Below, piece after piece: positions 2,956 through 44,445 of a stretch of 64,000 nt of DNA; position 1 is the stretch's first letter; every line of letters starts with the position of its first letter. Under the pieces are notes generated by a model, which had not been told where the DNA came from, did not search any database, and worked only from the letters and a program-made list of their open reading frames with translations. The stretch lies in sequence record NC_049849.1, one strand, 5' to 3'. Made by a program: the position numbers and the translations under genes.

Positions 2956-4530
2956 ATGGAAAAAATAGTCAAGATTTACAAGCGCGAGGCATTCCTCATC
3001 AAGAGCTCGCAAATCAAGCGAGACGTGCGGGAAGACATAGAACGCAACTTCACCTTCCGGTTCTATGAGCAGAAAGCGTGCGACAAGTGCGAGTTCGTAG
3101 CCGATAGGTTCGACGAGGATACGTGCGGCAGTTGTCCTGCGTATCTCGGCGGCGCCTTGATGGCCAAGAACATCAAGATCAAAGAGAACAAGTTCATTAC
3201 CACGCCGATTGGCAATCGCAAACTCCTAGTCAAGACTCTGGCAGAGCATGGGTACGAGGCCAAGTTCGTTTCCAAGCATCCGAAGAAAGAGGATACGGCG
3301 TTCAAGCGCCCCTTCAAGTTCACGGGTAAGCTGCGTGACTTCCAACCTGCAGCCGTGAGTGCGTTGATCGAAGGTCAACGCGGAGTACTGAAGGCTCGCC
3401 CACGTTCAGGCAAGACCGTTATGTCCACGGCTGCTATCTGCAAGGTCGGCAAGAAGACTTTGATCTTGGCCAGCCAGCACGATTGGTTGGTCGGCTTCTA
3501 TGAAACCTTCTGCGGTTCCAAGACTCAAGACCCATTGACTACAGCGCGGGGGTCTGGCGTCACGGCGGCCGAACGTCGAAAGTACTTCAAGGAGAAGAAG
3601 CGGGCCAACGTTGGCTTCTGCAAGACCTTGGAAGACTTCAAGCGTCATGACGTATGCTTGGCTACGGTGCAGACGTTTCGCAGCGAGGGTGGCCAGAAGC
3701 TGTTGCGCAAGATTCGTGATATGTTCCACGTCCTGGTCATTGACGAAGTACACTACTCGGCCGCTCCGAACTACGCTAAGGCTATCTCCAAGCTGAACGT
3801 CAAATACTGTTGGGGTTTGTCGGGTACTCCGACTCGCAAGGACCAACGGCATTCGATCATGCACAATCTGATTGGTCCGATCTTGTTTGAGCCGAAGATC
3901 GAATCGCTCAGACCTGCAATCGCATTGGTCAAGACAGACTTCACCGATCCGCGCAAACAGGCGCAGTGGTCCAGTCTCGTAAATAAACTAGAATCCGACC
4001 CTAAGCGGTTGAAGCTGATTGCCAAGTGGGCAGTGAAGGACATTGAGAACGGCCACATGGTGCTCCTGCCATTCGCACGTATCAAGGTCATCAAGGCCGT
4101 GGTCATGGCGATCAATAAGATCGCGGGTAAGAAAGTCGCCGAGGAGTTTCACGGCAGCGTTAAGAAGGAAAAGCGTACCGAGCTGATTGAGGCGGCCCGT
4201 AAGTACAAGGTCAAGTGCTTGGTAGGCCAGGCCAAGCTGCTGTCGACCGGCATCAACATCCCCCGCGCATCGTGCATCTATGACGTGACGTTCAGTTCCA
4301 ACAAAGAGAACTGCGAACAGCGCGTGGCGCGTATCCTCACTCCGTACGATGGAAAGCCCACGCCGTTGCTCCGCATCTTTATGGACAACACTGGTGTGCG
4401 GCGCGGATGTTTGCGAACAGAGTTCTGGCAGTGCATCAAGCCCAAGTTCAATCCGATATGGAAGGGCGACGATCAAGAGTTGTTCATCAACTACTTGTCG
4501 AACAAAGATAAGGACATGGAAAAATGGTAA
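2956..4530 (+). CDS. superfamily 2 DNA helicase (UvsW/XPB-like)
   Basis: Q-motif LRDFQ, Walker A ARPRSGKT, DEVH, SGT, LLSTGINIP, QRVARI; N-terminal CxxC...CxxC. Confidence 0.85.
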   Translation: MEKIVKIYKREAFLIKSSQIKRDVREDIERNFTFRFYEQKACDKCEFVADRFDEDTCGSCPAYLGGALMAKNIKIKENKFITTPIGNRKLLVKTLAEHGYEAKFVSKHPKKEDTAFKRPFKFTGKLRDFQPAAVSALIEGQRGVLKARPRSGKTVMSTAAICKVGKKTLILASQHDWLVGFYETFCGSKTQDPLTTARGSGVTAAERRKYFKEKKRANVGFCKTLEDFKRHDVCLATVQTFRSEGGQKLLRKIRDMFHVLVIDEVHYSAAPNYAKAISKLNVKYCWGLSGTPTRKDQRHSIMHNLIGPILFEPKIESLRPAIALVKTDFTDPRKQAQWSSLVNKLESDPKRLKLIAKWAVKDIENGHMVLLPFARIKVIKAVVMAINKIAGKKVAEEFHGSVKKEKRTELIEAARKYKVKCLVGQAKLLSTGINIPRASCIYDVTFSSNKENCEQRVARILTPYDGKPTPLLRIFMDNTGVRRGCLRTEFWQCIKPKFNPIWKGDDQELFINYLSNKDKDMEKW

Positions 4531-13104: not shown

Positions 13105-14109
13105 ATGCAAATCAAAACTTCCGATTACGTACTGGTTAAGCAGGCTAACGGCAAGCCGTTCCTGTTGAAGGCCGAGAAGGTAACGAGCGAAACGGTGACG
13201 GGTGTGGTGGTCAAGAACTGTCACATTCCCGGAAAGAAGCAAGTGCTGGACGTGCCGCGCAGTGACTGCTTTGCCAACATGGGTGACGAACCTGAGCCAG
13301 GCAAAGCCTACGGCGTAGACCTCGAAGTCTATCGTGGTCGCAAGGATCATCACGAGTTTGGTATTCAGAACTTCTTCTACAAGCCGAAGAAGGATGTTAC
13401 CAAGCAGTACCTCAAGATGTTGGACGTTGCCAGCAAGAAGCTGAAGGCCGCAGGCTTCGGCAAGATGCTGAACGACGAAATCATTTGGGAACTGTACAAG
13501 CACAAGGGTCAGAAGTGGGCAGGCTTCTACTACCCACGCAAGGGCGACACGATCCCGCCGCGCATCAAGCTGTACTTGGAAATCAACGGCGGTGTCGCCA
13601 AAGACTACATCGGTTACGTCTACCACGAGTTCGGGCATCACCTGCACAGCGCGTACCTGATGGAAAACACCAAGATGGACGCCAGGTGGATTCAGCTGTT
13701 CAATACGTCAGTCAAGGTCGTGAACATCAACAAGTCGCTGTGCGAGCAACTGCTGCAGGCTCTGCTTGATGGCGAAACTCGACCGTCCAAGTTCAAAGGC
13801 GACATTGAAGACGACGAGCTGAAGCTCGCGTATCAGTGGGTGCTGCGTACGATCCAGCAGAATCACGCAATTTCAGTACGCGAGCTCGACCGGTTGTTTG
13901 AAGCAGACTTCAAGTCCGATATCGAAGCGCTGTGGCCGAAGCATCACATCCGCAAGAAAGACTTGGAGCCCATCGTCTCCGACTACGCAACGACGAATTA
14001 CCGAGAGCTGTTTGCCGAGAGCTTCCGCATGTATATGGAAGGCATCAAGCTCCCGAAGAATGTTCATTCGCTGCTCGAGAAGACGCTCACCTACATCAAG
14101 AATCTGTAG
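13105..14109 (+). CDS. zincin metallopeptidase-like protein (anthrax lethal factor/PPEP-like)
   Basis: HEFGH zinc motif and downstream YATTNYRELFAESF third-ligand motif. Confidence 0.6.
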   Translation: MQIKTSDYVLVKQANGKPFLLKAEKVTSETVTGVVVKNCHIPGKKQVLDVPRSDCFANMGDEPEPGKAYGVDLEVYRGRKDHHEFGIQNFFYKPKKDVTKQYLKMLDVASKKLKAAGFGKMLNDEIIWELYKHKGQKWAGFYYPRKGDTIPPRIKLYLEINGGVAKDYIGYVYHEFGHHLHSAYLMENTKMDARWIQLFNTSVKVVNINKSLCEQLLQALLDGETRPSKFKGDIEDDELKLAYQWVLRTIQQNHAISVRELDRLFEADFKSDIEALWPKHHIRKKDLEPIVSDYATTNYRELFAESFRMYMEGIKLPKNVHSLLEKTLTYIKNL

Positions 14110-14735: not shown

Positions 14736-15301
14736 TTGTCAAACTTTTGGAACTGCTGCATATCTCGCACGAAGAATTTCTGCAGCGCTCGTGTTATACC
14801 GAAGCCGAGTTCAACAGCTGGGGTGAAATCAACGTGCCTCGCCAGGCGTATGTCATCGCAAATCTGATTGCTGCAAATCGCAACCTACAGCAAGCACAAC
14901 GTACGGTGATTCATATCGCAGCCGGCGACGAGAACTGGACGCCTTCGAGTGAAGAGCAGCAACAGTTGGCACGTGACTTCTTCAAGGCGATGAACGAGGG
15001 TACCCCCTTCACCACGCGTAACGGAGTCAAGGTCACGCCTGTGCAAGTCGGCGTCGTGAACAATCTGATTGTCGAACCGCGTGGTGATGAAGACACGCAA
15101 TACGGCAGTGAAGCAGAGCGCGCCATGGGTGGCACGGCGGGTGCCGGAACAGTCATCACTGCGGGCGACGAAACCTGGCAGCCAACGCAAGAGCAGCTCG
15201 AGCAACTCGTGAAAGAGTTCAAGGAAGCCGAGTACGATCCCAACGGCGGCTGGGTCCGTAAGCCGTACACTGTCATCAGCGACAAGAGCAACAACCCATG
15301 A
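14732..15301 (+). CDS. hypothetical protein, possible N-terminal HTH plus duplicated motif
   Basis: Internal repeat AGDENWTPSSEEQQQLARDF / AGDETWQPTQEQLEQLVKEF. Confidence 0.6.
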   Translation: MIVKLLELLHISHEEFLQRSCYTEAEFNSWGEINVPRQAYVIANLIAANRNLQQAQRTVIHIAAGDENWTPSSEEQQQLARDFFKAMNEGTPFTTRNGVKVTPVQVGVVNNLIVEPRGDEDTQYGSEAERAMGGTAGAGTVITAGDETWQPTQEQLEQLVKEFKEAEYDPNGGWVRKPYTVISDKSNNP

Positions 15302-16278
15302 AGCAATACCTTGACACCGTAGAATTCGTCATTGCCAACGGAGTACGGCAGTCTAACCGTACCGGCATCGACACCATTGCATTCCCTGGCGCTTCCATGC
15401 GCTTCGATCTGCGCGATGGGTTTCCTGCAGTCACGACCAAGAAGCTAGCCTTCAAGTCCGTCATCGGCGAAGGCATTGGGTTCTTGCGTGGCGTTGAGTC
15501 AGCCAAGGACTTCCGAGACCTCGGCTGCCAAGTCTGGAATCAGAACGCCAACGAGAATCAGCAGTGGTTGGACAATCCGTACCGCAAGGGTGAAGATGAC
15601 CTCGGCCCGGTCTACGGTTCGCAGTGGCGTCGCTGGAAAGGCACGAAGAAAATCTCGCGCTTTGACAAGAAAGCGAGTCGAGCGGCTATGGACTCGGGTT
15701 GGGAAATGGCTGGCGCCGATATCGCGGCTGAGGACGATCACCACTACTTCTTCTACGAGAAGGAAATCGACCAACTGCAGATGTGCTTGGACAAGCTGCG
15801 CAACAACCCGACCGATCGCCGCATTCTGTTCCACGGCTGGAACCCCGCGGTACTCGATCAAGTCGCACTCCCGGCATGCCATCTGCTGTATCAGTTTCTG
15901 CCGAACGTCGCACAGCGTGAGTTGTCCATGACTTGCTATATTCGTAGCAACGACTTGTTCCTCGGTGCACCGTTCAACATTGCAGAAGCTGCCTGGCTCC
16001 TGTCGTTGTTTGCTCGACTGTCTGGATTCACTCCGCGTTACTTGCAAATCTTTATCGGTGACGCACACGTATACGTCAACCACCTCGACGCATTCAAGCT
16101 TCAGCGCTCGCGTGAAGTCTACGCATCGCCGAAGCTGCAAATCTCTGATGAAGTTCCGACGCATACGCATCCGGCTGCTGAGAGCATTGACGAAGTAGCC
16201 AACCTCATTCGCCCCGAGCATTTCACTCTGGTCGACTATCTCCATCACGATCCCATCAAAGCCGACATGGCTGTTTAA
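15298..16278 (+). CDS. thyA: thymidylate synthase
   Basis: DLGPVYGSQWR, DRRILFHGWNP, ALPACHLLYQF, YIRSNDLFLGAPFNIA. Confidence 0.95.
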   Translation: MKQYLDTVEFVIANGVRQSNRTGIDTIAFPGASMRFDLRDGFPAVTTKKLAFKSVIGEGIGFLRGVESAKDFRDLGCQVWNQNANENQQWLDNPYRKGEDDLGPVYGSQWRRWKGTKKISRFDKKASRAAMDSGWEMAGADIAAEDDHHYFFYEKEIDQLQMCLDKLRNNPTDRRILFHGWNPAVLDQVALPACHLLYQFLPNVAQRELSMTCYIRSNDLFLGAPFNIAEAAWLLSLFARLSGFTPRYLQIFIGDAHVYVNHLDAFKLQRSREVYASPKLQISDEVPTHTHPAAESIDEVANLIRPEHFTLVDYLHHDPIKADMAV

Positions 16279-16924: not shown

Positions 16925-16933
16925 TCGTAAATA
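16925..16933 (+). promoter_or_regulatory. TCGTAAATA motif (candidate phage promoter) upstream of the deazaguanine cluster
   Basis: One of 16 exact copies on the + strand; intergenic; followed by a hairpin (16935-16961) and the queD RBS. Confidence 0.6.
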
Positions 16934-16934
16934 C

Positions 16935-16961
16935 AGGGATGTGGACTAGCTCCACGTCCCT
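16935..16961 (+). other. stem-loop (terminator or 5' stabilising hairpin)
   Basis: AGGGATGTGGA-CTAGC-TCCACGTCCCT. Confidence 0.5.
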
Positions 16962-16981: not shown

Positions 16982-17428
16982 ATGGTCTGGCAATCTACCA
17001 AAACGTACGGTCATGAAGTTGGACTGAGCTGCGCATTCCGACAATGGCGCGCTCACTCGCATTGCCGTTTCGTTCATGGGTACGCACTGGCATTCAAGTT
17101 CGTCTTCGAGACTGAAGAGCTGGACAGCACGAACTGGGCAGTGGACTTCGGCGGCCTCAAGTCGTTGAAGCAAATGCTGCAAGACACGTTTGACCACAAG
17201 ACTGTTGTTGCCGAAGACGATCCCGAACTCGAATGGTTCAAGGAAGCAGAGAAGCGTGGCATCCTCGAACTGGTGGTACTGCCGCATGGTGGCTGCGAGA
17301 AGTTTGCAGAGTTCACGTATGAAGCCGCTGAGCAGTGGCTCAAGGATGCGGGCTTCAGTCCTCGTTGCCGACTGGTCTCTGTTGAAGTCTCCGAGCACGG
17401 CGCCAACTCCGCAATCTTCAAGCGTTAA
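16982..17428 (+). CDS. queD: 6-carboxy-5,6,7,8-tetrahydropterin synthase
   Basis: HSHCRFVHGY, VDFGGLK, FDHKT; T-fold size; Que cluster context. Confidence 0.9.
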   Translation: MVWQSTKTYGHEVGLSCAFRQWRAHSHCRFVHGYALAFKFVFETEELDSTNWAVDFGGLKSLKQMLQDTFDHKTVVAEDDPELEWFKEAEKRGILELVVLPHGGCEKFAEFTYEAAEQWLKDAGFSPRCRLVSVEVSEHGANSAIFKR

Positions 17429-17430
17429 TT

Positions 17431-18033
17431 ATGAAACCAATCATTCTTCTGTACGGTGGTGGCATCGACTCGACTACGCTACTGGCGCACCTGTCTAAGC
17501 ACCGTCGAGTATATGCAATGTTCTTTGCCTACGGTCAGAAGGCCGAAGCGTTGGAGCGCGAAGCCTGCAAGTATTTCTGCGAACGCTACCACGCTGAGTT
17601 CGTTGAAGTCAAGCTGCCCATTTCGGAACTCGCGGACTCCGCGATCCTGAACGGCGGTGCTCTGGCTGACAATCCCGCTATCAACATTGTTGATGGTCGC
17701 AACCTGACGTTCATTACCTTGGCTTCGATGTTCGCGGCCAAGGTAGACGTGACTGAGATTGCTGTAGGCTTCCATGTTGAGCCGGTAGCGCGCCCCTTCC
17801 CGGATGCGAGCCCCGAGTTCCTGGATGCAGTTAACACGATGCTGCCGCAAGCCTTCGTACACAAAGCTCAAGTCGTTGCTCCTTTCAAGGACATGACCCG
17901 CGCTGAAATCTTCCGATACGCGGATTCGATGGACTCAGAAATTCTGGCCCAAGCACATACGTGCTATGAAGACGTACCCGGTGGTTGCGGCAAGTGCAGC
18001 CACTGCCTAATCAAAGCAGAACTAACGGAGTAA
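17431..18033 (+). CDS. queC: 7-cyano-7-deazaguanine synthase
   Basis: PP-loop GGGIDS, FAYGQ, VDGRN, YPD-like FPDAS, zinc cluster TCY...CGKCSHC. Confidence 0.88.
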   Translation: MKPIILLYGGGIDSTTLLAHLSKHRRVYAMFFAYGQKAEALEREACKYFCERYHAEFVEVKLPISELADSAILNGGALADNPAINIVDGRNLTFITLASMFAAKVDVTEIAVGFHVEPVARPFPDASPEFLDAVNTMLPQAFVHKAQVVAPFKDMTRAEIFRYADSMDSEILAQAHTCYEDVPGGCGKCSHCLIKAELTE

Positions 18034-18036
18034 TCC

Positions 18037-19317
18037 ATGTGTGGCATCATCCTCGCAGCCGGTCCCAAGTATCTGTCCGGCGGATACATGAGCACTCAAC
18101 TGAGCCATCGTGGTCCTGACGCAGACACCGCAGGCGTGAACGGCAACGTATTCATTGCGCATCGTCGCTTGGCTATCGTTGACACTACATCGCTGAATGC
18201 TCAACAGCCACGATTTAAAGCGCAGCAGTACGCTTGCGTTTTCAACGGCGAGCTTTTCAACTACAAGAAACTGACGTGTGGTTCCGAGATTGAGCTGATT
18301 TCGGAACTGCTGTATGCTGGGCACGATCTGAGTCAGATACTCAATGGCTACTACGCCGTCGCCATGCACGATATCTCCCGCAATCGCATCACCCTGGCTC
18401 GCGATATCTTTGGCGTCATGCCTTTGTTCTATGCGAAGTACGAGGGTTCCTTCTTTGTCGCGTCTGAGCGCAAGGCAATGTATGCGCTGGTTCCCGAAGA
18501 CAAGATCAAGCCGGTGCCTGCTAACACTCGCATCGACTACTGCTTGAAGACTCGAAAGCTCACGTTCACCAAGTACACGCAGCCTTGGACGTTCAATCTG
18601 CCGGGCGTCATCTACGGCCCGTACGAAAGCCACACGGCTCAAGTCTTTCTCAATGCAGTGCGCGAAGTTGCACAGCATAGCGATAACGGATTCTCGGTTG
18701 CTCTATCCGGCGGCCTGGATTCGTCGTTGGTTCTGGCAGCGTGCCGTGGCTTGGGTCTGACGCCCACCGCGATTCTCACGACGTACATTGCAGAGACCGA
18801 AACCGAAGAAATGCGCAGCGCCAAGGCTCTGGTCAAGCACTTCAAGTGGGAGCATCTGCATAAGCTCATCAAACTCGAAGAGCCCGACTACGACCTGCGA
18901 CACTGGATCGAAACGCCGCCGAATCCGATTCGTGATTTTGCGTATCGTCGTCATGCTGCAGTTGCCAAGCACAGTCCGAGCAAAGTGATCCTGTGCGGTG
19001 AAGGTGCTGATGAGCTAGGCCTCGGCTATCCTCTAAATGGCGAGTTCAATACCCCGCTCGCACGATACATGAAGAAGGTTTCGCTGTTGAAGTCTCAAGC
19101 TACAATGACGCTCGATCGCGTTAACACGGCTGGTATGCAGTACTCGAAAGAATATCGCGTGCCGTTCCTACATATCCCATTTGTGCAGCACGCGTTGACT
19201 GTCGACCAAGTCGGCAAGACGCACTTCCGCAAGATGGCAACGTATCTTGGGATTCCTGACGGCATCCTACCGAATAACAAATACTCCGATGAAGAACGCA
19301 TCGGTCGAGCCCAATGA
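18037..19317 (+). CDS. asparagine synthetase B-like glutamine amidotransferase
   Basis: N-terminal Ntn nucleophile MCGI, HRGPD, HRRLAIVD, FNGELFN, ARDIFG; PP-loop SGGLDSS; GEGADEL. Confidence 0.85.
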   Translation: MCGIILAAGPKYLSGGYMSTQLSHRGPDADTAGVNGNVFIAHRRLAIVDTTSLNAQQPRFKAQQYACVFNGELFNYKKLTCGSEIELISELLYAGHDLSQILNGYYAVAMHDISRNRITLARDIFGVMPLFYAKYEGSFFVASERKAMYALVPEDKIKPVPANTRIDYCLKTRKLTFTKYTQPWTFNLPGVIYGPYESHTAQVFLNAVREVAQHSDNGFSVALSGGLDSSLVLAACRGLGLTPTAILTTYIAETETEEMRSAKALVKHFKWEHLHKLIKLEEPDYDLRHWIETPPNPIRDFAYRRHAAVAKHSPSKVILCGEGADELGLGYPLNGEFNTPLARYMKKVSLLKSQATMTLDRVNTAGMQYSKEYRVPFLHIPFVQHALTVDQVGKTHFRKMATYLGIPDGILPNNKYSDEERIGRAQ

Positions 19318-20735
19318 AAAACAAGAAACAAGTAGCGACTGTCGAGCATGTTGGCTACGACTTGATGCCCGCCGCTGTAGACTTCTTTGATACTTTTGAG
19401 AGTGTCGGAGTCAAGTACGGCAACAACAAGCAGAGCAAGTGGTGGACTCGCGATCTGCGCGATGGTGTCCATGTCTTCTATCTGCCGGATCGTACGCTCT
19501 ACCGTGGACGTGCCGGAGCGACTCAGTCGTGCATTGCCAGTGTTGAAGTCGATGAGTTCCTTGAGTACTCGTTGCTGAGCAATCCCGAGCTGTACTCTAG
19601 CTGGGGCCTGCGCTACGCAATGATTAGCCCGCCACATATGGGGTTCAAGCCGGCTCCGGTACGCAATCCGCATATCCGTTTGTTCGCGGACTCGGGTGGC
19701 TTCCAGATTCGCCAAGGCGTCACCGACTTCATTGATCCCAATACTCTGGTCGACTTCTACAACAAGACGACTGACATTGGTATCGGCCTTGACGTTCCTA
19801 TGCACCCGTTGCTGTATCCGAAGATGCTGCAGCGCATGGCGCATGTTACCTGCATGAACGGCGAGTACATCAAGAAGCAACTGAACCCTGGCGTCATGCT
19901 GTACGATCTGAACCACGGCATGGACTTGGTCGACCGCAAGGCTTTCCTCGACGTGACCGAAAAGTACGAGCCGCTCGATGGTATCTCGCTGGCTGGTACG
20001 TCGAGCAATGCGCGTGGTGAGTACGGCGTGTCTGCGCACATCGTTAACGGCGTGGTTGGTATCGCATATGTCCTGGCTCGTTCTGCCAAGCGTTATCGCA
20101 CGGCTCACATCCTGGGCACCACGACTCCGTTCTATATGTTCGTGTTCAACGTCATGACTCGCGGCAAGTTCTTTCCGCATATCACATCTGATAGTTCGAC
20201 GTACGCGCAAGCGGCAATCATGAATACGCACTTGATGGGCATCCCCGGCATCAACATGCTGCGACGGAATCCGATGCCGAAGACTGATCTGTCGACTCTG
20301 CCATGCAGCTGCCCTATCTGCCACATGACGAAGTACACGCAGTCGTACGTAATCAACAATCGGTCAAACATGATTCACAGCATCTGGTACTACGTTCAGA
20401 TGATGCGCTACACGGAGCACTTGGCTGACGAGTTCCTGGCAGGCCGTACCAAGGACTTGGAAATCCTGAAGGTGCTCGGACCCTCGACGTTTAGCCCTGT
20501 CCACATGAAGGGTACGATGCGATTCCTACGCGACCTGATCGAGCACGGCTACAACAAGGCTTATGCGAACAGCAAGGACTTCATTCACTCGATGCTGGGT
20601 AAGAAGACCACGACCAATCTCTTTGGTGGCGAGCGTTCGGCTGGAGTCTTACACGGTGATGCCGAACGTACGGACCGCATTCTCACCAGCTACGAAACGT
20701 ACCATAAGAAGACCGGAGTGAAGAAGCGCAAATGA
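19314..20735 (+). CDS. TGT/DpdA-family guanine transglycosylase
   Basis: ADSGGFQ, LDVP, HILG, SDSSTY (nucleophilic Asp), zinc site CSCPIC...H; lies inside the Que cluster. Confidence 0.8.
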   Translation: MKNKKQVATVEHVGYDLMPAAVDFFDTFESVGVKYGNNKQSKWWTRDLRDGVHVFYLPDRTLYRGRAGATQSCIASVEVDEFLEYSLLSNPELYSSWGLRYAMISPPHMGFKPAPVRNPHIRLFADSGGFQIRQGVTDFIDPNTLVDFYNKTTDIGIGLDVPMHPLLYPKMLQRMAHVTCMNGEYIKKQLNPGVMLYDLNHGMDLVDRKAFLDVTEKYEPLDGISLAGTSSNARGEYGVSAHIVNGVVGIAYVLARSAKRYRTAHILGTTTPFYMFVFNVMTRGKFFPHITSDSSTYAQAAIMNTHLMGIPGINMLRRNPMPKTDLSTLPCSCPICHMTKYTQSYVINNRSNMIHSIWYYVQMMRYTEHLADEFLAGRTKDLEILKVLGPSTFSPVHMKGTMRFLRDLIEHGYNKAYANSKDFIHSMLGKKTTTNLFGGERSAGVLHGDAERTDRILTSYETYHKKTGVKKRK

Positions 20736-21337
20736 AAGTAGAAATCAAAACGTTTGAAAACGTGTGGGGCTGCGCTGTATTCAACGCCGAGCTGCATCGG
20801 AAGATGAAGCATCATCATTTGGTGGTCGGCGTCGATACGCTATTCAGTTCCAAATACAAGCCGGTCAAAGGCAAGACCACAATCGTCATCGACAACTTTG
20901 CACGTCTGCGCAGTAGCGGCGTTCCTATCATCGGGTACGAAAAGTCTCCGACGCAGACCTGGGTGAAAGTTAAAGCTAGCTGGAAGAAGCCGAAGCCCAA
21001 CAAGCCCGAGATTAAGAAGCCGGTGTATCTGGCAGGCGAACTCAAGGTGCTGCTCCCTACGGTTCCGCTGATGCTCGAGTATCAAGCCGCCGTGACCTTG
21101 GAGCAGATGGAAGCTCTGGCCGAGAAGTACAGAGCTGAAATCGACAAGCCTAAGAAAGGCTCACACAAGTGGTTGCGTCGTTCGGTCAACAGCACGCTCA
21201 AGGTCCTGGCGCCTGAGAAGTATGACCCCAAGTTTAAAGAGAAGGCCGCAGCTGCTCCTAAGTCCAAGCTTGGTGCCAAGGCGAAGAAAGCGAAAGACGT
21301 AAATACAGAAGTCGCTAAGAGGAAGGGCAAGAAATGA
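20732..21337 (+). CDS. hypothetical Lys-rich protein within the Que cluster
   Basis: Coupled ATGA overlaps on both sides. Confidence 0.6.
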   Translation: MKVEIKTFENVWGCAVFNAELHRKMKHHHLVVGVDTLFSSKYKPVKGKTTIVIDNFARLRSSGVPIIGYEKSPTQTWVKVKASWKKPKPNKPEIKKPVYLAGELKVLLPTVPLMLEYQAAVTLEQMEALAEKYRAEIDKPKKGSHKWLRRSVNSTLKVLAPEKYDPKFKEKAAAAPKSKLGAKAKKAKDVNTEVAKRKGKK

Positions 21338-22182
21338 AAGACGTGATTGTCATTCAAAACGTCGACCGAGTAATTCGACCTAAGGACTATGAAACCCTCG
21401 GCGAGAAGATTCGAGTAACGTCGATCTTCCGTACGATTCAAGGCGAAGGTCCGTATACCGGATATCCTTCGGTCTTCGTTCGACTGTCGGGCTGCAACTT
21501 CGGTAACAAGGCAGAGGACTCCGCGTGCCGTTGGTGTGATACAGCCTTCCAGTTCGATCAAGGCTATGATTACACGGCAGAAGAACTCCTGGCTGCAGTG
21601 CAGAATCAGCCTGACTTCCACGCCTCTGACGTTGTAGTCATCACTGGTGGTGAGCCGACGCTGCAACACAATCTGCTGAAGTTCATGAAGCTGTGCCATG
21701 AGAACGACCTGTCTATGCAGATTGAGACCAACGGCACACAGCCCTCGTTCTACCAGCAGATAGAAGAGCTTGATGAAGAAGGAACCCTGCCTTATACTTT
21801 TGTAGCGAAGGGTACAGGTGTCTTGCACGTCGTGAGTCCCAAAGCGATTTACAAGGCCGGCAAGATTCCGCAACCTAGTCAGCATGTCCTGAAGGCTACC
21901 GCGTGTCTCAAGTTCGTCGTGTCATCTGATCCTGAGAGCCCGCATCACGAAGTGCCCGAGTGGTCGCGTAGTGCCCGCAACAAGTTCCGAAGCATACCCG
22001 TGTATGTTTCGCCCATGGCCGTTTACAAGCGAGCGTACGCTGGTGAAGTCTCATCCATTTGGGACCGAGACCTCATCGACCAAGAGCGCACGGCAGCTAA
22101 CTACGCGTATGCTGCACAGTACGCGATGGCTAATGGTTTCCTGCTATCACTCCAAACTCACTTGTTCACGTCGATACCATGA
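21334..22182 (+). CDS. queE: 7-carboxy-7-deazaguanine synthase (radical SAM)
   Basis: IFRTIQGEG, VFVRLSGC, CX10CX2C cluster motif, VITGGEP, IETNGT, SPK, LSLQTH. Confidence 0.9.
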   Translation: MKDVIVIQNVDRVIRPKDYETLGEKIRVTSIFRTIQGEGPYTGYPSVFVRLSGCNFGNKAEDSACRWCDTAFQFDQGYDYTAEELLAAVQNQPDFHASDVVVITGGEPTLQHNLLKFMKLCHENDLSMQIETNGTQPSFYQQIEELDEEGTLPYTFVAKGTGVLHVVSPKAIYKAGKIPQPSQHVLKATACLKFVVSSDPESPHHEVPEWSRSARNKFRSIPVYVSPMAVYKRAYAGEVSSIWDRDLIDQERTAANYAYAAQYAMANGFLLSLQTHLFTSIP

Positions 22183-22538
22183 ACAACCCCAATCCCTCCG
22201 TTGACGATATATTGTACCTTCTTCGTCGTGGCATCAACGGCGAGGTTGCCGTCACTTACAAAGACTACCCCTTATTCAAGGGACCGAGCCAGTTCATAAC
22301 GTACTTCGGTAACTGCACTGTCGTGTTTTTCGATGACGGCGGCGGATGCCTGAAGTATGTAGAGAGCGCAAGCGACGCGCACGGCAACGTCGCTGTGTAC
22401 TCCGATTGGCACAACGCTTGGCTCGAAGCTAACAAAGACGAAGAAGACGATTGGTTCCGCGATCCCATCGAACTGCTGAGCGACGCTGAATACATTGAAC
22501 TGCTGGACGTGCTCCAGCGCGCAACAAAGAAGGACTGA
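22179..22538 (+). CDS. hypothetical protein
   Basis: Coupled 119-aa ORF. Confidence 0.55.
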   Translation: MNNPNPSVDDILYLLRRGINGEVAVTYKDYPLFKGPSQFITYFGNCTVVFFDDGGGCLKYVESASDAHGNVAVYSDWHNAWLEANKDEEDDWFRDPIELLSDAEYIELLDVLQRATKKD

Positions 22539-22540
22539 AC

Positions 22541-23200
22541 ATGACTTACACTACCGATCACAAGACTGGCCTCGACGTTCGAGCACATCTGATTGAGCAA
22601 GGCGTAGAGACGCCGTTCACTCCGAAGAAGATTGACCAGACGCGCTTGCAAGTTCTGTTTGCAGAGCTGCACCGCGAGGTCGGTCTCGACTTGGCAGACG
22701 ATTCGATCGCTGAGACTCCGCGCCGCCTGGCCAAGCTGTACTCCACGCAAGAGTACTTCCGCGGTCTCGACTACGCGAACTTCCCGAAGGCCACGGTCGT
22801 GGACAACAAGATGGGCTACGACGAAATGGTGGTTGAGCGCAACATCATCGTCAACAGCCTTTGTGAGCATCACTGGCTGCCCATCATTGGCGGCGCTTTC
22901 GTCGCGTACATTCCCGAGAAGAAAGTCATCGGTCTGTCGAAGCTCAATCGCCTCGTTGACTTCTTCTGCCGACGCCCGCAGATTCAAGAGCGCCTGGTAG
23001 AGCAAATCTATCACGCTCTGTCGTTCCTGCTGGAGACTAAGAACGTCGCAGTCGTGATTGAAGCAGAGCATATGTGCGTCAAGACGCGTGGCGTTGAAGA
23101 TGCGTGCTCTGACACCGTGACTTCGAAGCTCGGCGGCAAGTTCCGCGATCCCGCTCTGCGTGCTGAGTTCCTTACTCTTGCCAAAGGACTGCGTGGATGA
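22541..23200 (+). CDS. folE: GTP cyclohydrolase I
   Basis: ETPRRLAK, SLCEHHWLP, VIGLSKLNR, RRPQIQERL, EAEHMC. Confidence 0.95.
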   Translation: MTYTTDHKTGLDVRAHLIEQGVETPFTPKKIDQTRLQVLFAELHREVGLDLADDSIAETPRRLAKLYSTQEYFRGLDYANFPKATVVDNKMGYDEMVVERNIIVNSLCEHHWLPIIGGAFVAYIPEKKVIGLSKLNRLVDFFCRRPQIQERLVEQIYHALSFLLETKNVAVVIEAEHMCVKTRGVEDACSDTVTSKLGGKFRDPALRAEFLTLAKGLRG

Positions 23201-25254: not shown

Positions 25255-25983
25255 ATGAAAAACATTCGTGAACTGTTGGCCCTGCAGTACGCTACCAATG
25301 ACAAGCTGGCCCCTGGCTGGCTCGAACGCTCGGACGTGGACTTCTATTCCGCGATCCGCGATGAAGCAGGTGAACTAGCTGTCTCCGCAGGTTGGAAGCC
25401 GTGGTGGTCGAAGGCTGAGTCGAAGCTGGACCGCGACAACTGCAAGGTCGAAGTCGTTGACCTGCTGCACTTCCATATGTCGGCAGTGCTGCGTGAATGC
25501 TTCGAGCAGGAAGGCGACGAGCTGGAAGACCTGAGCGATGAAGCGCTGAAGCGTGAACTCATCGAGTCGGCCGCCGACAATTTCGAGTACGCCAACTACT
25601 CGAGCATCAACCCGGATCGTACGGACGTTCAGGCTGTCAATGACTACCTGGGTGACGTGCTGTGCATGGGCGCTATCTCTTCGGTCCCTCAGTTGATGGC
25701 TCTGGCTGAACGCTTTGGCATGATTGAGGCTGAGTTCGGTCTGCGCTACATCGCAAAGAATGCACTCAACAACTTCCGCAAGGCTCACAACTACAAGGGC
25801 GATATCGAAGGCATGCCTGCGTATCGCAAGATGTGGTTCGACGGCCAACAGGAAGACAACTACTACGTGACCGCGTATCTGAACAAGCAAGTCGAGAACG
25901 GTAAGACTCCGACCTATCAGCAGTTCTATGACGCAATGGAAGCCATGTATGTCGGAAATTACGACCCTACTCAATTTGCTTGA
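25255..25983 (+). CDS. dimeric (all-alpha) dUTPase
   Basis: AIRDEAGEL, WKPWW, VEVVDLLHF, YIAKNALNNFR. Confidence 0.8.
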   Translation: MKNIRELLALQYATNDKLAPGWLERSDVDFYSAIRDEAGELAVSAGWKPWWSKAESKLDRDNCKVEVVDLLHFHMSAVLRECFEQEGDELEDLSDEALKRELIESAADNFEYANYSSINPDRTDVQAVNDYLGDVLCMGAISSVPQLMALAERFGMIEAEFGLRYIAKNALNNFRKAHNYKGDIEGMPAYRKMWFDGQQEDNYYVTAYLNKQVENGKTPTYQQFYDAMEAMYVGNYDPTQFA

Positions 25984-40688: not shown

Positions 40689-40763
40689 GGGCCTGTAGCT
40701 CAAGGGTAGAGCAGTCGACTCATAATCGGTTGGTTGCGGGTTCGAACCCCGCCGGGCCTACCA
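40689..40763 (+). tRNA. tRNA-Ile2 (anticodon CAT, lysidine type; Met not excluded)
   Basis: Full cloverleaf, anticodon loop CTCATAA, TTCGAAC T-loop, encoded CCA; anticodon arm resembles bacterial ileX. Confidence 0.88.
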
Positions 40764-42540: not shown

Positions 42541-42617
42541 GTCGCGTTAGCTCAGTGGATTAGAGCAACAGCCTTCTAAGCTGTGGGTCATTGGTTCGAA
42601 TCCAATACGCGATGCCA
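42541..42617 (+). tRNA. tRNA-Arg (anticodon TCT)
   Basis: Full cloverleaf GTCGCGT/ACGCGAT, anticodon loop CTTCTAA, TTCGAAT, CCA end. Confidence 0.93.
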
Positions 42618-44356: not shown

Positions 44357-44445
44357 TCGTAAATAGTAGGGTAAGCAGGGAAGTCTGCAGTCTTCCCTGT
44401 AGTACAGAATAAGTTTGCGAGTTCTGAATTCAGAAATCGTAAATA
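44357..44445 (+). promoter_or_regulatory. tandem TCGTAAATA motifs with a hairpin and a 14-bp palindrome
   Basis: Motifs at 44357 and 44437; CAGGGAAG/CTTCCCTG hairpin 44376-44399; TTCTGAATTCAGAA 44422-44435. Confidence 0.65.

Follow-up and report, generated by a model that had tools for sequence, protein, structure and literature searches.

An asparagine synthetase-like partner of QueC in the 7-deazaguanine operon of Achromobacter phage Motura may take the place of Gat-QueC

Introduction

Anti-restriction chemistry based on 7-deazaguanines in phage DNA is a growing family, and eight such bases have been recorded so far. In these pathways, the step from 7-carboxy-7-deazaguanine (CDG) or 7-cyano-7-deazaguanine (preQ0) to an amide or an amidine is filled by the unrelated enzymes ArcS, Gat-QueC, and QueF-L. 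An operon of Achromobacter phage Motura (MN094788.1/NC_049849.1, 221,431 bp; host Achromobacter animicus) raises the question of what an asparagine synthetase B (AsnB)-like enzyme does at this point of such a pathway. The window analyzed here is the first 64 kb of the genome. At positions 16982–23200, which match Motura with 100% identity at identical coordinates, it holds eight plus-strand open reading frames (ORFs): queD, queC, asnB-like, tgt-like (for tRNA-guanine transglycosylase, TGT), orf201, queE, orf119, and folE. Our tentative answer is that the products of this operon convert GTP to a 7-deazaguanine base that then replaces guanine in phage DNA, with a unit of QueC and the AsnB-like enzyme (AsnBL) in place of Gat-QueC and with dG+, the deoxynucleoside of the archaeosine base, as the product.

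A deazaguanine synthesis and insertion system was already noted in outline for Motura by Iyer et al. in 2021 (PMC7824862). The pathway itself is therefore of a known kind, which limits the novelty suggested by an earlier note on this DNA. The main texts of PMC6884629 and PMC10516641 mention neither Motura nor an asparagine synthetase-like enzyme, and a full-text search found no literature link between an asparagine synthetase-like protein and phage deazaguanine. Three elements appear to be undescribed: the strictly linked pair of a QueC subtype and AsnBL, orf201, and, as candidate DpdA enzymes, a clade of jumbo-phage transglycosylases.

Results

AsnBL is a separate subfamily linked to QueC

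The AsnBL gene (18037–19317, plus strand) encodes a glutamine-dependent amidotransferase of 426 amino acids, which matches Pfam GATase_7 and Asn_synthase and is composed of an N-terminal nucleophile (Ntn) glutaminase domain and an AsnB-type PP-loop synthetase domain. In a collection of 5.8 billion proteins, AsnBL heads a separate subfamily of about 48 clusters, with lengths of 410–460 amino acids and scores from 480 to 122 bits, while ordinary asparagine synthetases (500–650 amino acids) score at most 112 bits. Nearly all of the clusters lie on phage-like contigs, and among sequenced phage isolates the enzyme was found in Motura only.

Wherever upstream sequence was available (11/11 loci), the gene immediately follows QueC on its 3′ side, and further que genes are close by. 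In six contigs, with AsnBL identities from 55% to 31%, it starts at or a few bases from the QueC stop codon (6/6), and FolE, QueD, or QueE is close by. A scan of viral contigs gave four further AsnBL loci with the same arrangement, and none of the seven longer AsnB-like genes in that scan is accompanied by que genes. Cellular genomes were scanned with one genome per species (185,579 species), and the 80 best AsnB-like loci were returned. Only one of them scores as a member of the AsnBL subfamily (386 bits, against at most 237 for the others), and this locus alone has QueC upstream and QueE downstream; no que genes were found at the other 79. The co-occurrence in relatives bears out the earlier note, which had assigned the AsnB-like gene to the pathway; the condition that the note had set for its refutation, AsnB-like genes of relatives lacking que neighbors, clearly fails, and the association is specific.

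The catalytic residues of AsnB are retained. Among 31 AsnBL sequences, the glutaminase nucleophile Cys2 is present in 30, and in the Asn-Gly-Glu stretch at positions 70–72, Gly71 and Glu72 are invariant and Asn70 is found in 30. Asp123, the SGGLDS PP-loop, Glu322, Asp325, and Glu326 are invariant, as is the Gly-Glu-Gly-Ala-Asp-Glu stretch apart from its Ala (29/31); Arg361, Lys394, and Lys415 are conserved. In both active sites, AsnBL thus has the residues that define AsnB, and its family profile aligns with Escherichia coli AsnB (1ct9) over residues 18–420 (E = 1.6e-55). From these residues, we conclude that AsnBL should be an active glutamine- and ATP-dependent amidotransferase.

The acceptor, to judge from the same alignment, is probably not aspartate. 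In human asparagine synthetase, Asp-400 is part of the pocket holding the amino group of aspartate (PMC6748925). The corresponding position (Asp-384 in E. coli) is Thr in 18, Asn in 11, and Ser in 2 of the 31 AsnBL sequences and is never Asp. Of the aspartate-site residues named by Zhu et al., the first two and the arginine are kept, and an invariant Asp lies two residues past the Asp-400 position. Moreover, the subfamily has invariant residues of its own, namely, Asp360, Gly366, Ala222, and Phe69, as well as aromatics at positions 373 and 416. AsnBL also falls under the curated cut-offs for asparagine synthases (TIGR01536, 159 against 267 bits; NF006949, 140 against 499 bits), and it therefore shows neither the aspartate pocket nor the score of these enzymes. 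Given the Asp-400 position and the wide margin by which the cut-offs are missed, an ordinary asparagine synthetase was rejected. An AsnBL that merely donates ammonia as a subunit is disfavored because its PP-loop and synthetase residues are invariant.

Related enzymes indicate what chemistry may be expected. In the AsnB family, a carboxylate is activated by adenylation and then receives ammonia released from glutamine. The asparagine synthetase homologue CmoY modifies the carboxylate of 5-carboxymethylcytosine in DNA and uses glycine as the nucleophile (PMC12783734), and PesC, a nitrile synthetase of the AsnB family, proceeds past the amide to the nitrile.

The partner QueC lacks residues of nitrile-forming QueCs

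The gene upstream of AsnBL (17431–18033, plus strand) encodes a QueC of a special subtype with 200 amino acids (Pfam QueC, E = 1.1e-36). Aligned with the solved structures 2pg3 and 3bl5, it keeps the four zinc cysteines and belongs to the QueC fold. In contrast to the canonical motifs SGGxDS, YGQRH, and YPDC, it carries GGGIDS, YGQKA, and FPDA, and it reaches 116.6 bits with TIGR00364 against a cut-off of 150.3 bits. By motif and by score, it is therefore not a canonical QueC.

To place these changes, 21 phage sequences and two solved QueC structures were compared. In all eight QueCs paired with AsnBL, the loop begins with GGG, and Ala stands both at the Cys of PDC and at the His of YGQRH. The six stand-alone phage QueCs (including that of phage CAjan) and the two QueCs of the PDB all have the SGG PP-loop and YPDC (8/8), and five of these eight have the exact YGQRH. 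All five fused Gat-QueCs, including that of phage 9g, have Ala for the YGQRH His and Asn for the PDC Cys. In the QueC of Campylobacter phage CC_R7, which we take to be a QueC* of the CP220 group (dADG, with the amide 7-amido-7-deazaguanine, ADG, in DNA), Thr replaces the PDC Cys, and the SGG loop and the His are kept. Every QueC type tied to a non-nitrile product is thus without the PDC Cys, and the paired type shares the His-to-Ala change with the dG+ type. This relation between residue losses and product is a correlation across the aligned sequences and not a mechanism; it suggests that QueC subtypes might serve as a sequence marker predicting the base in phage DNA.

As a separate observation, Vibrio phage GR11A (locus L033, 5031–6597), which has a transglycosylase of the same clade as that of Motura, carries two adjacent QueC paralogues, one canonical and the other divergent and without PDC and YGQRH.

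The pair and Gat-QueC look like alternatives

In Gat-QueC, a glutaminase is fused to QueC. In Motura, the glutaminase and QueC are two genes, and the PP-loop domain of AsnBL is of the AsnB type, with a match to Pfam QueC of only E = 0.0083. PHROG 10428, a family of Gat-QueC length that is matched by Motura QueC, is not matched by AsnBL. However, the AsnBL family is collinear with the 9g Gat-QueC over the glutaminase and PP-loop domains (hhalign probability 88%, E = 2.8e-6). Furthermore, Xanthomonas phage PhiXhv-12 and Erwinia phage Ep032 have a transglycosylase of the Motura clade together with a full-length Gat-QueC elsewhere in the genome. Because these two phages carry Gat-QueC instead, Gat-QueC and the QueC/AsnBL pair look like alternatives in these jumbo phages.

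These results refine two statements of the earlier note. It had called the usual tailoring enzymes not recognizable, and family profiles indeed found no paralogue of the TGT-like protein, AsnBL, or QueC elsewhere in the window, and hence neither an ArcS-type TGT paralogue nor a fused Gat-QueC; QueF and QueF-L were not searched directly. Beyond the window, the GenBank product names between 64 and 114 kb of the genome include none related to the pathway. The absence of Gat-QueC therefore stands for the fusion, yet AsnBL is collinear with it and related jumbo phages carry it. For the same two reasons, AsnBL is more likely a replacement of a known tailoring step than part of the different route that had been proposed.

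Two relatives have additional genes at these sites. A PIG-L-type deacetylase and a GT1 glycosyltransferase lie beside the transglycosylase of the clade in Burkholderia phage BCSR5 (locus L002, 3123–11803) and beside Gat-QueC in PhiXhv-12 (locus L032, 6001–9235). BCSR5 also has a PAPS-reductase-like PP-loop protein in place of QueC. These neighbors hint at a further deazaguanine derivative, perhaps a sugar-bearing one. The que cluster of BCSR5 additionally includes a protein with an Acb2/Tad1 hairpin domain (L002, 10189–10509), a family of anti-CBASS/Thoeris sponges.

The transglycosylase belongs to a jumbo-phage clade

The gene following AsnBL (19314–20735, plus strand) encodes a TGT-superfamily transglycosylase of 473 amino acids with a presumed DpdA role, recognized by its family signature, profile, and AlphaFold2 model. 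The Motura protein alone matches nothing in Pfam, PHROGs, or PADLOC. Its identity is visible only through the family alignment because such single-sequence library searches gave nothing. The protein has 55 relatives in the large protein collection. Among the family members, PHROGs gave three weak matches only, and Pfam TGT was matched by 7 of 36 members and DUF6610, the DpdA4 family (PMC10516641), by none of the 36.

Invariant in the 36 members are D126-S127-G128-G129, D160, and D293-S294, which align with archaeosine TGT (arcTGT, 1iq8) and contain both catalytic aspartates and the one that binds the substrate, as well as C331/C333/C336/H355, which form the zinc site known from TGT enzymes. 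Searches with the family profile gave E-values of 1.8e-11 for 1iq8 and 1.2e-3 for bacterial DpdA (7ui4). The model (predicted local distance difference test score, pLDDT, 88.2; predicted template-modeling score 0.89) matches TGT structures at E = 1.3e-11 and human QTRT1 at E = 1e-11. The DSGG-type aspartate, the substrate and nucleophile aspartates, the CxCxxC...H zinc site, and a modeled TIM-barrel fold thus place the protein in the TGT superfamily.

Its nearest predicted viral structures have 446, 529, and 531 amino acids and template-modeling (TM) scores of 0.75–0.78, and their sizes match the homologues in BCSR5, a GR7B-type Vibrio phage, and NCTB. The protein R9TGF0 of phage nt-1 matches the model at E = 4.4e-9 (TM 0.44), and M4SLA5 of phiST (259 amino acids), presumably the phiST DpdA3, at E = 5.4e-4 (TM 0.34). 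DpdA1-like proteins annotated as queuine tRNA-ribosyltransferases match far more weakly than the viral neighbors, and the comparison with 9g DpdA1 gave an hhalign probability of 72% over 164 columns. In these pairwise profile and fold comparisons, the protein joined none of the described DpdA subfamilies (bacterial DpdA and DpdA1–4). By the comparisons run here, the aligned residues and the model identify it as a likely TGT-superfamily enzyme of a jumbo-phage clade outside those subfamilies.

Members of the clade are found in Burkholderia phage BCSR5, Vibrio phages GR7B and GR11A, Pseudomonas putida jumbo phages, NCTB, and Xanthomonas and Erwinia phages, usually with genes for primase, sigma factor, and RecA close by; the Motura gene likewise sits among replication genes. 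No que genes occur within 7 kb of the clade transglycosylase in Vibrio phage GR7B (locus L003), P. putida phage Illi-2 (L004), or NCTB (L005).

In small phages, the QueC/AsnBL pair has another neighbor. A search of these loci for DpdA with Pfam and a TGT-motif pattern found none, but phmmer with 9g DpdA1 succeeded. In a single pass, it matched a DpdA1-type gene with a DSGA motif beside the pair (E = 4.7e-20 to 4.9e-6). The pair adjoins two different kinds of DNA transglycosylase and is therefore a portable module. All catalytic and zinc residues of TGT, the TGT fold, and the pair beside DpdA1 in small phages make the Motura protein a credible DNA transglycosylase, as had been suggested. The association of the module with DpdA1 and the context of replication genes indicate that DNA is the likely target. 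Queuosine-bearing tRNAs are those with GUN anticodons. The tRNA genes of the window are Met(CAT) and Arg(TCT) only, and neither has a GUN anticodon. The viruses known to carry these modifications all encode DpdA and modify their own DNA after replication (PMC10516641).

FolE, QueD, and QueE as the predicted route to CDG

The remaining synthesis genes are those expected for CDG. QueD, a 6-carboxytetrahydropterin synthase of the PTPS fold (16982–17428, plus strand; 148 amino acids), matches Pfam PTPS (E = 1.2e-15) and the QueD-like PHROG 2389 (E = 4.6e-42), and its NCBIfam QueD match falls under the cut-off. QueE, a CDG synthase of the radical S-adenosylmethionine (SAM) type (21334–22182, plus strand; 282 amino acids), matches Pfam Radical_SAM and, over residues 22–278, the QueE-like PHROG 2076 (E = 6.7e-44). 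The NCBIfam QueE models give about 72 bits, below their cut-off and ranked above other radical-SAM families. Together with this family match, the cluster cysteines C54-x10-C65-x2-C68 identify the protein as QueE. FolE, a GTP cyclohydrolase I (22541–23200, plus strand; 219 amino acids), exceeds the curated equivalog cut-off of NF006824 (264.2 against 202 bits; Pfam E = 7.8e-57). As a side observation, QueE is interrupted by an insertion in two relatives (L007, 12159–14021; L006, 10302–12224), one of these proteins having 620 amino acids with Hint/intein matches and the other 640 amino acids with a NUMOD3 match.

orf201 is conserved and orf119 is an orphan

The earlier note had counted two ORFs of the operon as possible tailoring or accessory factors. 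Of these, only orf201 (20732–21337, plus strand) is conserved, a protein of unmatched fold that follows the transglycosylase and ends in a Lys-rich C-terminal tail specific to Motura. The ORF that follows the transglycosylase in the related contig L007 shares 39% identity with it, and an exhaustive search found 10 homologue clusters of 150–177 amino acids, while a word-indexed protein search matched only orf201 itself. Its AlphaFold2 model is confident (pLDDT 87.9) and has no fold match in the PDB (best E = 3.1); we therefore assign it no function. It is absent from the small-phage loci with the QueC/AsnBL pair. If it belongs to the system, orf201 goes with the jumbo-phage transglycosylase and not with the pair. 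In contrast, orf119 (22179–22538, plus strand) has a sub-threshold DUF7693 match only and no homologue in sequenced phages other than Motura, and the ORF at its place in the close relative L007 is unrelated. We see no reason to regard orf119 as a tailoring factor.

Operon layout and upstream elements

From queD to folE, the junctions measure +2, +3, −4, −4, −4, −4, and +2 nt, and no broken genes were found in 16982–23200. The ORF 3′ of folE overlaps it by 4 nt (−4) and is thus also coupled; position 23200 is therefore not the end of the operon. GenBank labels three of the operon genes as asparagine synthetase B, tRNA-guanine transglycosylase, and QueC.

A promoter-like motif, TCGTAAATA, lies at 16925–16933 (plus strand), 49 nt before the queD ATG. 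All eight ORFs and this motif were thus found where the earlier note had placed its coupled operon. The window holds 16 exact copies of TCGTAAATA against 0.15 expected, all on the plus strand, at 3977, 9419, 11542, 11923, 16925, 26205, 31904, 40349, 42042, 42513, 43012, 44357, 44437, 47876, 50265, and 63475. An A-rich run often precedes the copies, and several fall within long ORFs. A possible function of the motif is that of a promoter read by transcription machinery of the phage itself. Between TCGTAAATA and the queD ribosome-binding site, a hairpin with an 11-bp stem (16935–16961, plus strand) is the top terminator-like match in 14–27 kb. Hairpins that start with CAGGGA and end with TCCCTG directly follow the motif at three sites, here and after the copies at 44357 and 63475; they may be structures of the 5′ untranslated region or terminators.

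Several neighbors are recorded here as side observations. Thymidylate synthase and dUTPase genes flank the operon (15298–16278 and 25255–25983 of the window). The two tRNA genes of the window are on the plus strand (Met(CAT), 40689–40763; Arg(TCT), 42541–42617), and the second starts 20 nt past a copy of TCGTAAATA. An ORF of 334 amino acids (13105–14109, plus strand) has a sub-threshold Pfam match to an ATLF metalloprotease-type domain over residues 280–332 (23.2 bits against a cut-off of 27.4 bits), which is probably a zinc-protease-like motif only. Beyond the window, at 74267–77092 of the genome, Motura has genes for homospermidine synthase and glutathionylspermidine synthase; its polyamine enzymes are treated in PMC9992855.

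Discussion

From the observed gene identities, coupling, residue conservation, and co-occurrence, we infer the substrate of AsnBL, the product of the pathway, the DNA target, and whether tailoring comes before or after insertion. By homology, FolE, QueD, and QueE would convert GTP to CDG. Next, the special QueC and AsnBL would work together as a unit of two genes that needs glutamine and ATP and replaces Gat-QueC; in this unit, one PP-loop site would adenylate the C7 carbonyl and the Ntn domain of AsnBL would hydrolyze glutamine to supply ammonia. The product would lie past the amide, with the amidine (the archaeosine base, G+) favored. The TGT-like enzyme would put this base, or a precursor, into DNA after replication and thereby shield the DNA from restriction. 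In this case, the pair would be a fourth, ATP- and glutamine-dependent solution beside Gat-QueC, ArcS, and QueF-L.

Several points argue for this assignment. The unit has two intact ATP sites and one intact glutaminase and always occurs in a CDG-producing pathway and with a transglycosylase. Ordinary QueC is reported to work in two rounds, in which CDG is first adenylated and takes up ammonia to become ADG, and ADG is then adenylated in turn and yields the nitrile by elimination (PMC10484667). Gat-QueC with DpdA leads to dG+ (PMC6884629). With an ammonia donor, ADG, preQ0, and G+ are the possible end products. Since the glutaminase nucleophile and the PP-loop are invariant, ammonia would be transferred onto an adenylated carbonyl, which gives these known bases. 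That two ATP-dependent enzymes are always kept argues against a stop at the amide. Within this set, G+ is favored because the paired QueC is without the residues of nitrile-forming QueCs and its losses match the dG+ type at both positions, and because related phages put Gat-QueC in this role.

Four considerations weigh against this assignment. Ammonia addition to a nitrile requires no ATP, whereas the AsnBL PP-loop is invariant. The paired QueCs are overall no nearer to Gat-QueC than to ordinary QueC, and the two shared substitutions, drawn from the 21 sequences and two structures compared, have no known mechanistic meaning. The characterized AsnB-family reactions considered here all start from a carboxylate (CmoY, PMC12783734; PesC), which favors a conversion of CDG to ADG by AsnBL and leaves the amidine step unexplained. 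Finally, the sequence is compatible with either DNA or tRNA as the target.

The carboxylate chemistry leads to a possible though rather doubtful alternative, a split, glutamine-dependent route to preQ0 in which AsnBL would convert CDG to ADG and the special QueC would dehydrate ADG to the nitrile, leaving dPreQ0 in DNA. Here, the AsnB precedent is better. What defines AsnB catalysis is that a carboxylate is adenylated and then attacked by ammonia, and AsnBL keeps all residues needed for this reaction; moreover, CDG is the normal substrate of QueC and one of only two carboxylates in the pathway, the other being 6-carboxytetrahydropterin, the product of QueD. In addition, the presence of two ATP-using enzymes agrees with ordinary QueC having two steps that require ATP (PMC10484667), and the loss of one half-reaction could explain why the PP-loop is altered in the paired QueC. 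Nevertheless, the PDC cysteine, kept in all nitrile-forming QueCs examined, is missing from the paired QueCs, as it is from the dG+ type and the dADG-type QueC*. Related jumbo phages use Gat-QueC at this point, and QueF, which would need preQ0, was not seen at the six pair contigs.

The pathway could also end at the amide. The base dADG is known in Campylobacter phage CP220 and Pantoea phage MED16. In this case, AsnBL would supply ammonia or make ADG itself, with a QueC variant that cannot form the nitrile. Amide formation is the activity of AsnB enzymes, and the loss of the PDC cysteine is common to the paired QueCs and the Campylobacter QueC* of a phage group reported to have dADG. One PP-loop enzyme would then be redundant, yet both have intact ATP motifs in 11/11 loci, and we consider this outcome unlikely.

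The earlier note had raised the possibility of a new base. In this case, AsnBL, perhaps together with orf201, would build a C7 side chain that DNA is not known to carry. The pocket residues peculiar to AsnBL (Asp360, Gly366, Ala222, Phe69, and the aromatics at 373 and 416) would fit such a role, AsnB homologues can take other nucleophiles, such as glycine in CmoY (PMC12783734), and orf201 is conserved beside the transglycosylase and has no known fold. In contrast, the glutaminase nucleophile and oxyanion residues are essentially invariant, so that the donor would be ammonia, and ammonia added to CDG, ADG, or preQ0 gives known bases only; moreover, orf201 is absent from the small-phage pair loci. 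We therefore regard this derivative as quite improbable, and the suggestion as overstated given the invariant nucleophile and PP-loop. With ammonia from glutamine as the donor, a new base is possible but unlikely. The combined proposal that the pair makes an unrecorded C7 side chain, that the transglycosylase is a sixth, jumbo-phage-specific DpdA subfamily, and that orf201 is an accessory factor likewise finds little credence with us.

A function outside DNA, with the TGT-like enzyme modifying tRNA or AsnBL being an ordinary metabolic asparagine synthetase that merely lies within the operon, could draw on the nearer match of the transglycosylase to tRNA enzymes (arcTGT, E = 1.8e-11; human QTRT1, E = 1e-11) than to bacterial DpdA (E = 1.2e-3) or 9g DpdA1 (72%), on its GenBank label, and on the unlinked asparagine synthase of PaBG, another phage of this group, but is very unlikely given that the AsnBL subfamily occurs solely beside QueC and never has Asp at the aspartate-pocket position, that in small phages the pair has DpdA1 as its neighbor, for which insertion of the base into DNA was demonstrated in 9g (PMC6884629), that the window encodes no GUN-anticodon tRNA, and that known viruses with these synthesis genes all modify DNA (PMC10516641).

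A conserved QueC/AsnBL pair would be one more answer to the amidation step, driven by ATP and glutamine. Because Pfam, PHROGs, and PADLOC miss both the pair and the jumbo-phage transglycosylase clade, surveys and annotation pipelines under-count them, which bears on the choice of restriction enzymes, sequencing chemistries, and CRISPR tools for such phages.

Comparison with known systems

The system closest in logic is the dG+ system of phage 9g, which consists of FolE, QueD, QueE, a fused Gat-QueC, and DpdA1. Motura has the same FolE/QueD/QueE logic, a class-II glutaminase combined with QueC chemistry, and a TGT-family enzyme, that of 9g acting on DNA, and its QueC has lost the same two positions as the QueC domain of Gat-QueC. 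In contrast to 9g, Motura has two genes and no fusion, its glutaminase carries an AsnB-type PP-loop domain of its own (E = 1.6e-55 with AsnB, against a probability of only 88% with Gat-QueC), and its transglycosylase of 473 amino acids is distant from DpdA1.

The dPreQ0 systems of Escherichia phage CAjan and Mycobacterium phage Rosebush have FolE, QueD, QueE, QueC, and a transglycosylase in common with Motura, whereas the CAjan QueC is an ordinary one (SGG, YGQRH, YPDC) and has no amidotransferase partner. Similar to Motura, the dADG system of the Campylobacter CP220 type (QueC*, DpdA3) has a QueC without the PDC cysteine, as seen in the related CC_R7, and its transglycosylase is so divergent that it had escaped earlier searches. 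However, QueC* keeps the SGG loop and the histidine and has no AsnB-like partner, and the presumed phiST DpdA3 matches the Motura model only weakly (E = 5.4e-4, TM 0.34).

The bacterial Dpd island (DpdA, DpdB, DpdC), which puts preQ0-derived bases into DNA, shares a TGT-family enzyme with Motura. Here, the Motura transglycosylase differs in giving no PADLOC match and reaching bacterial DpdA (7ui4) at only E = 1.2e-3, and no DpdB- or DpdC-like protein was recognized. Finally, AsnBL resembles AsnB and the asparagine synthetase-like tailoring enzymes CmoY and PesC in its architecture of two domains and in its Ntn cysteine, PP-loop, and Glu/Asp cluster. It differs from them in being approximately 100–130 residues shorter, in never having Asp at the Asp-400 position, in its family-specific invariant residues, and in its strict linkage to QueC.

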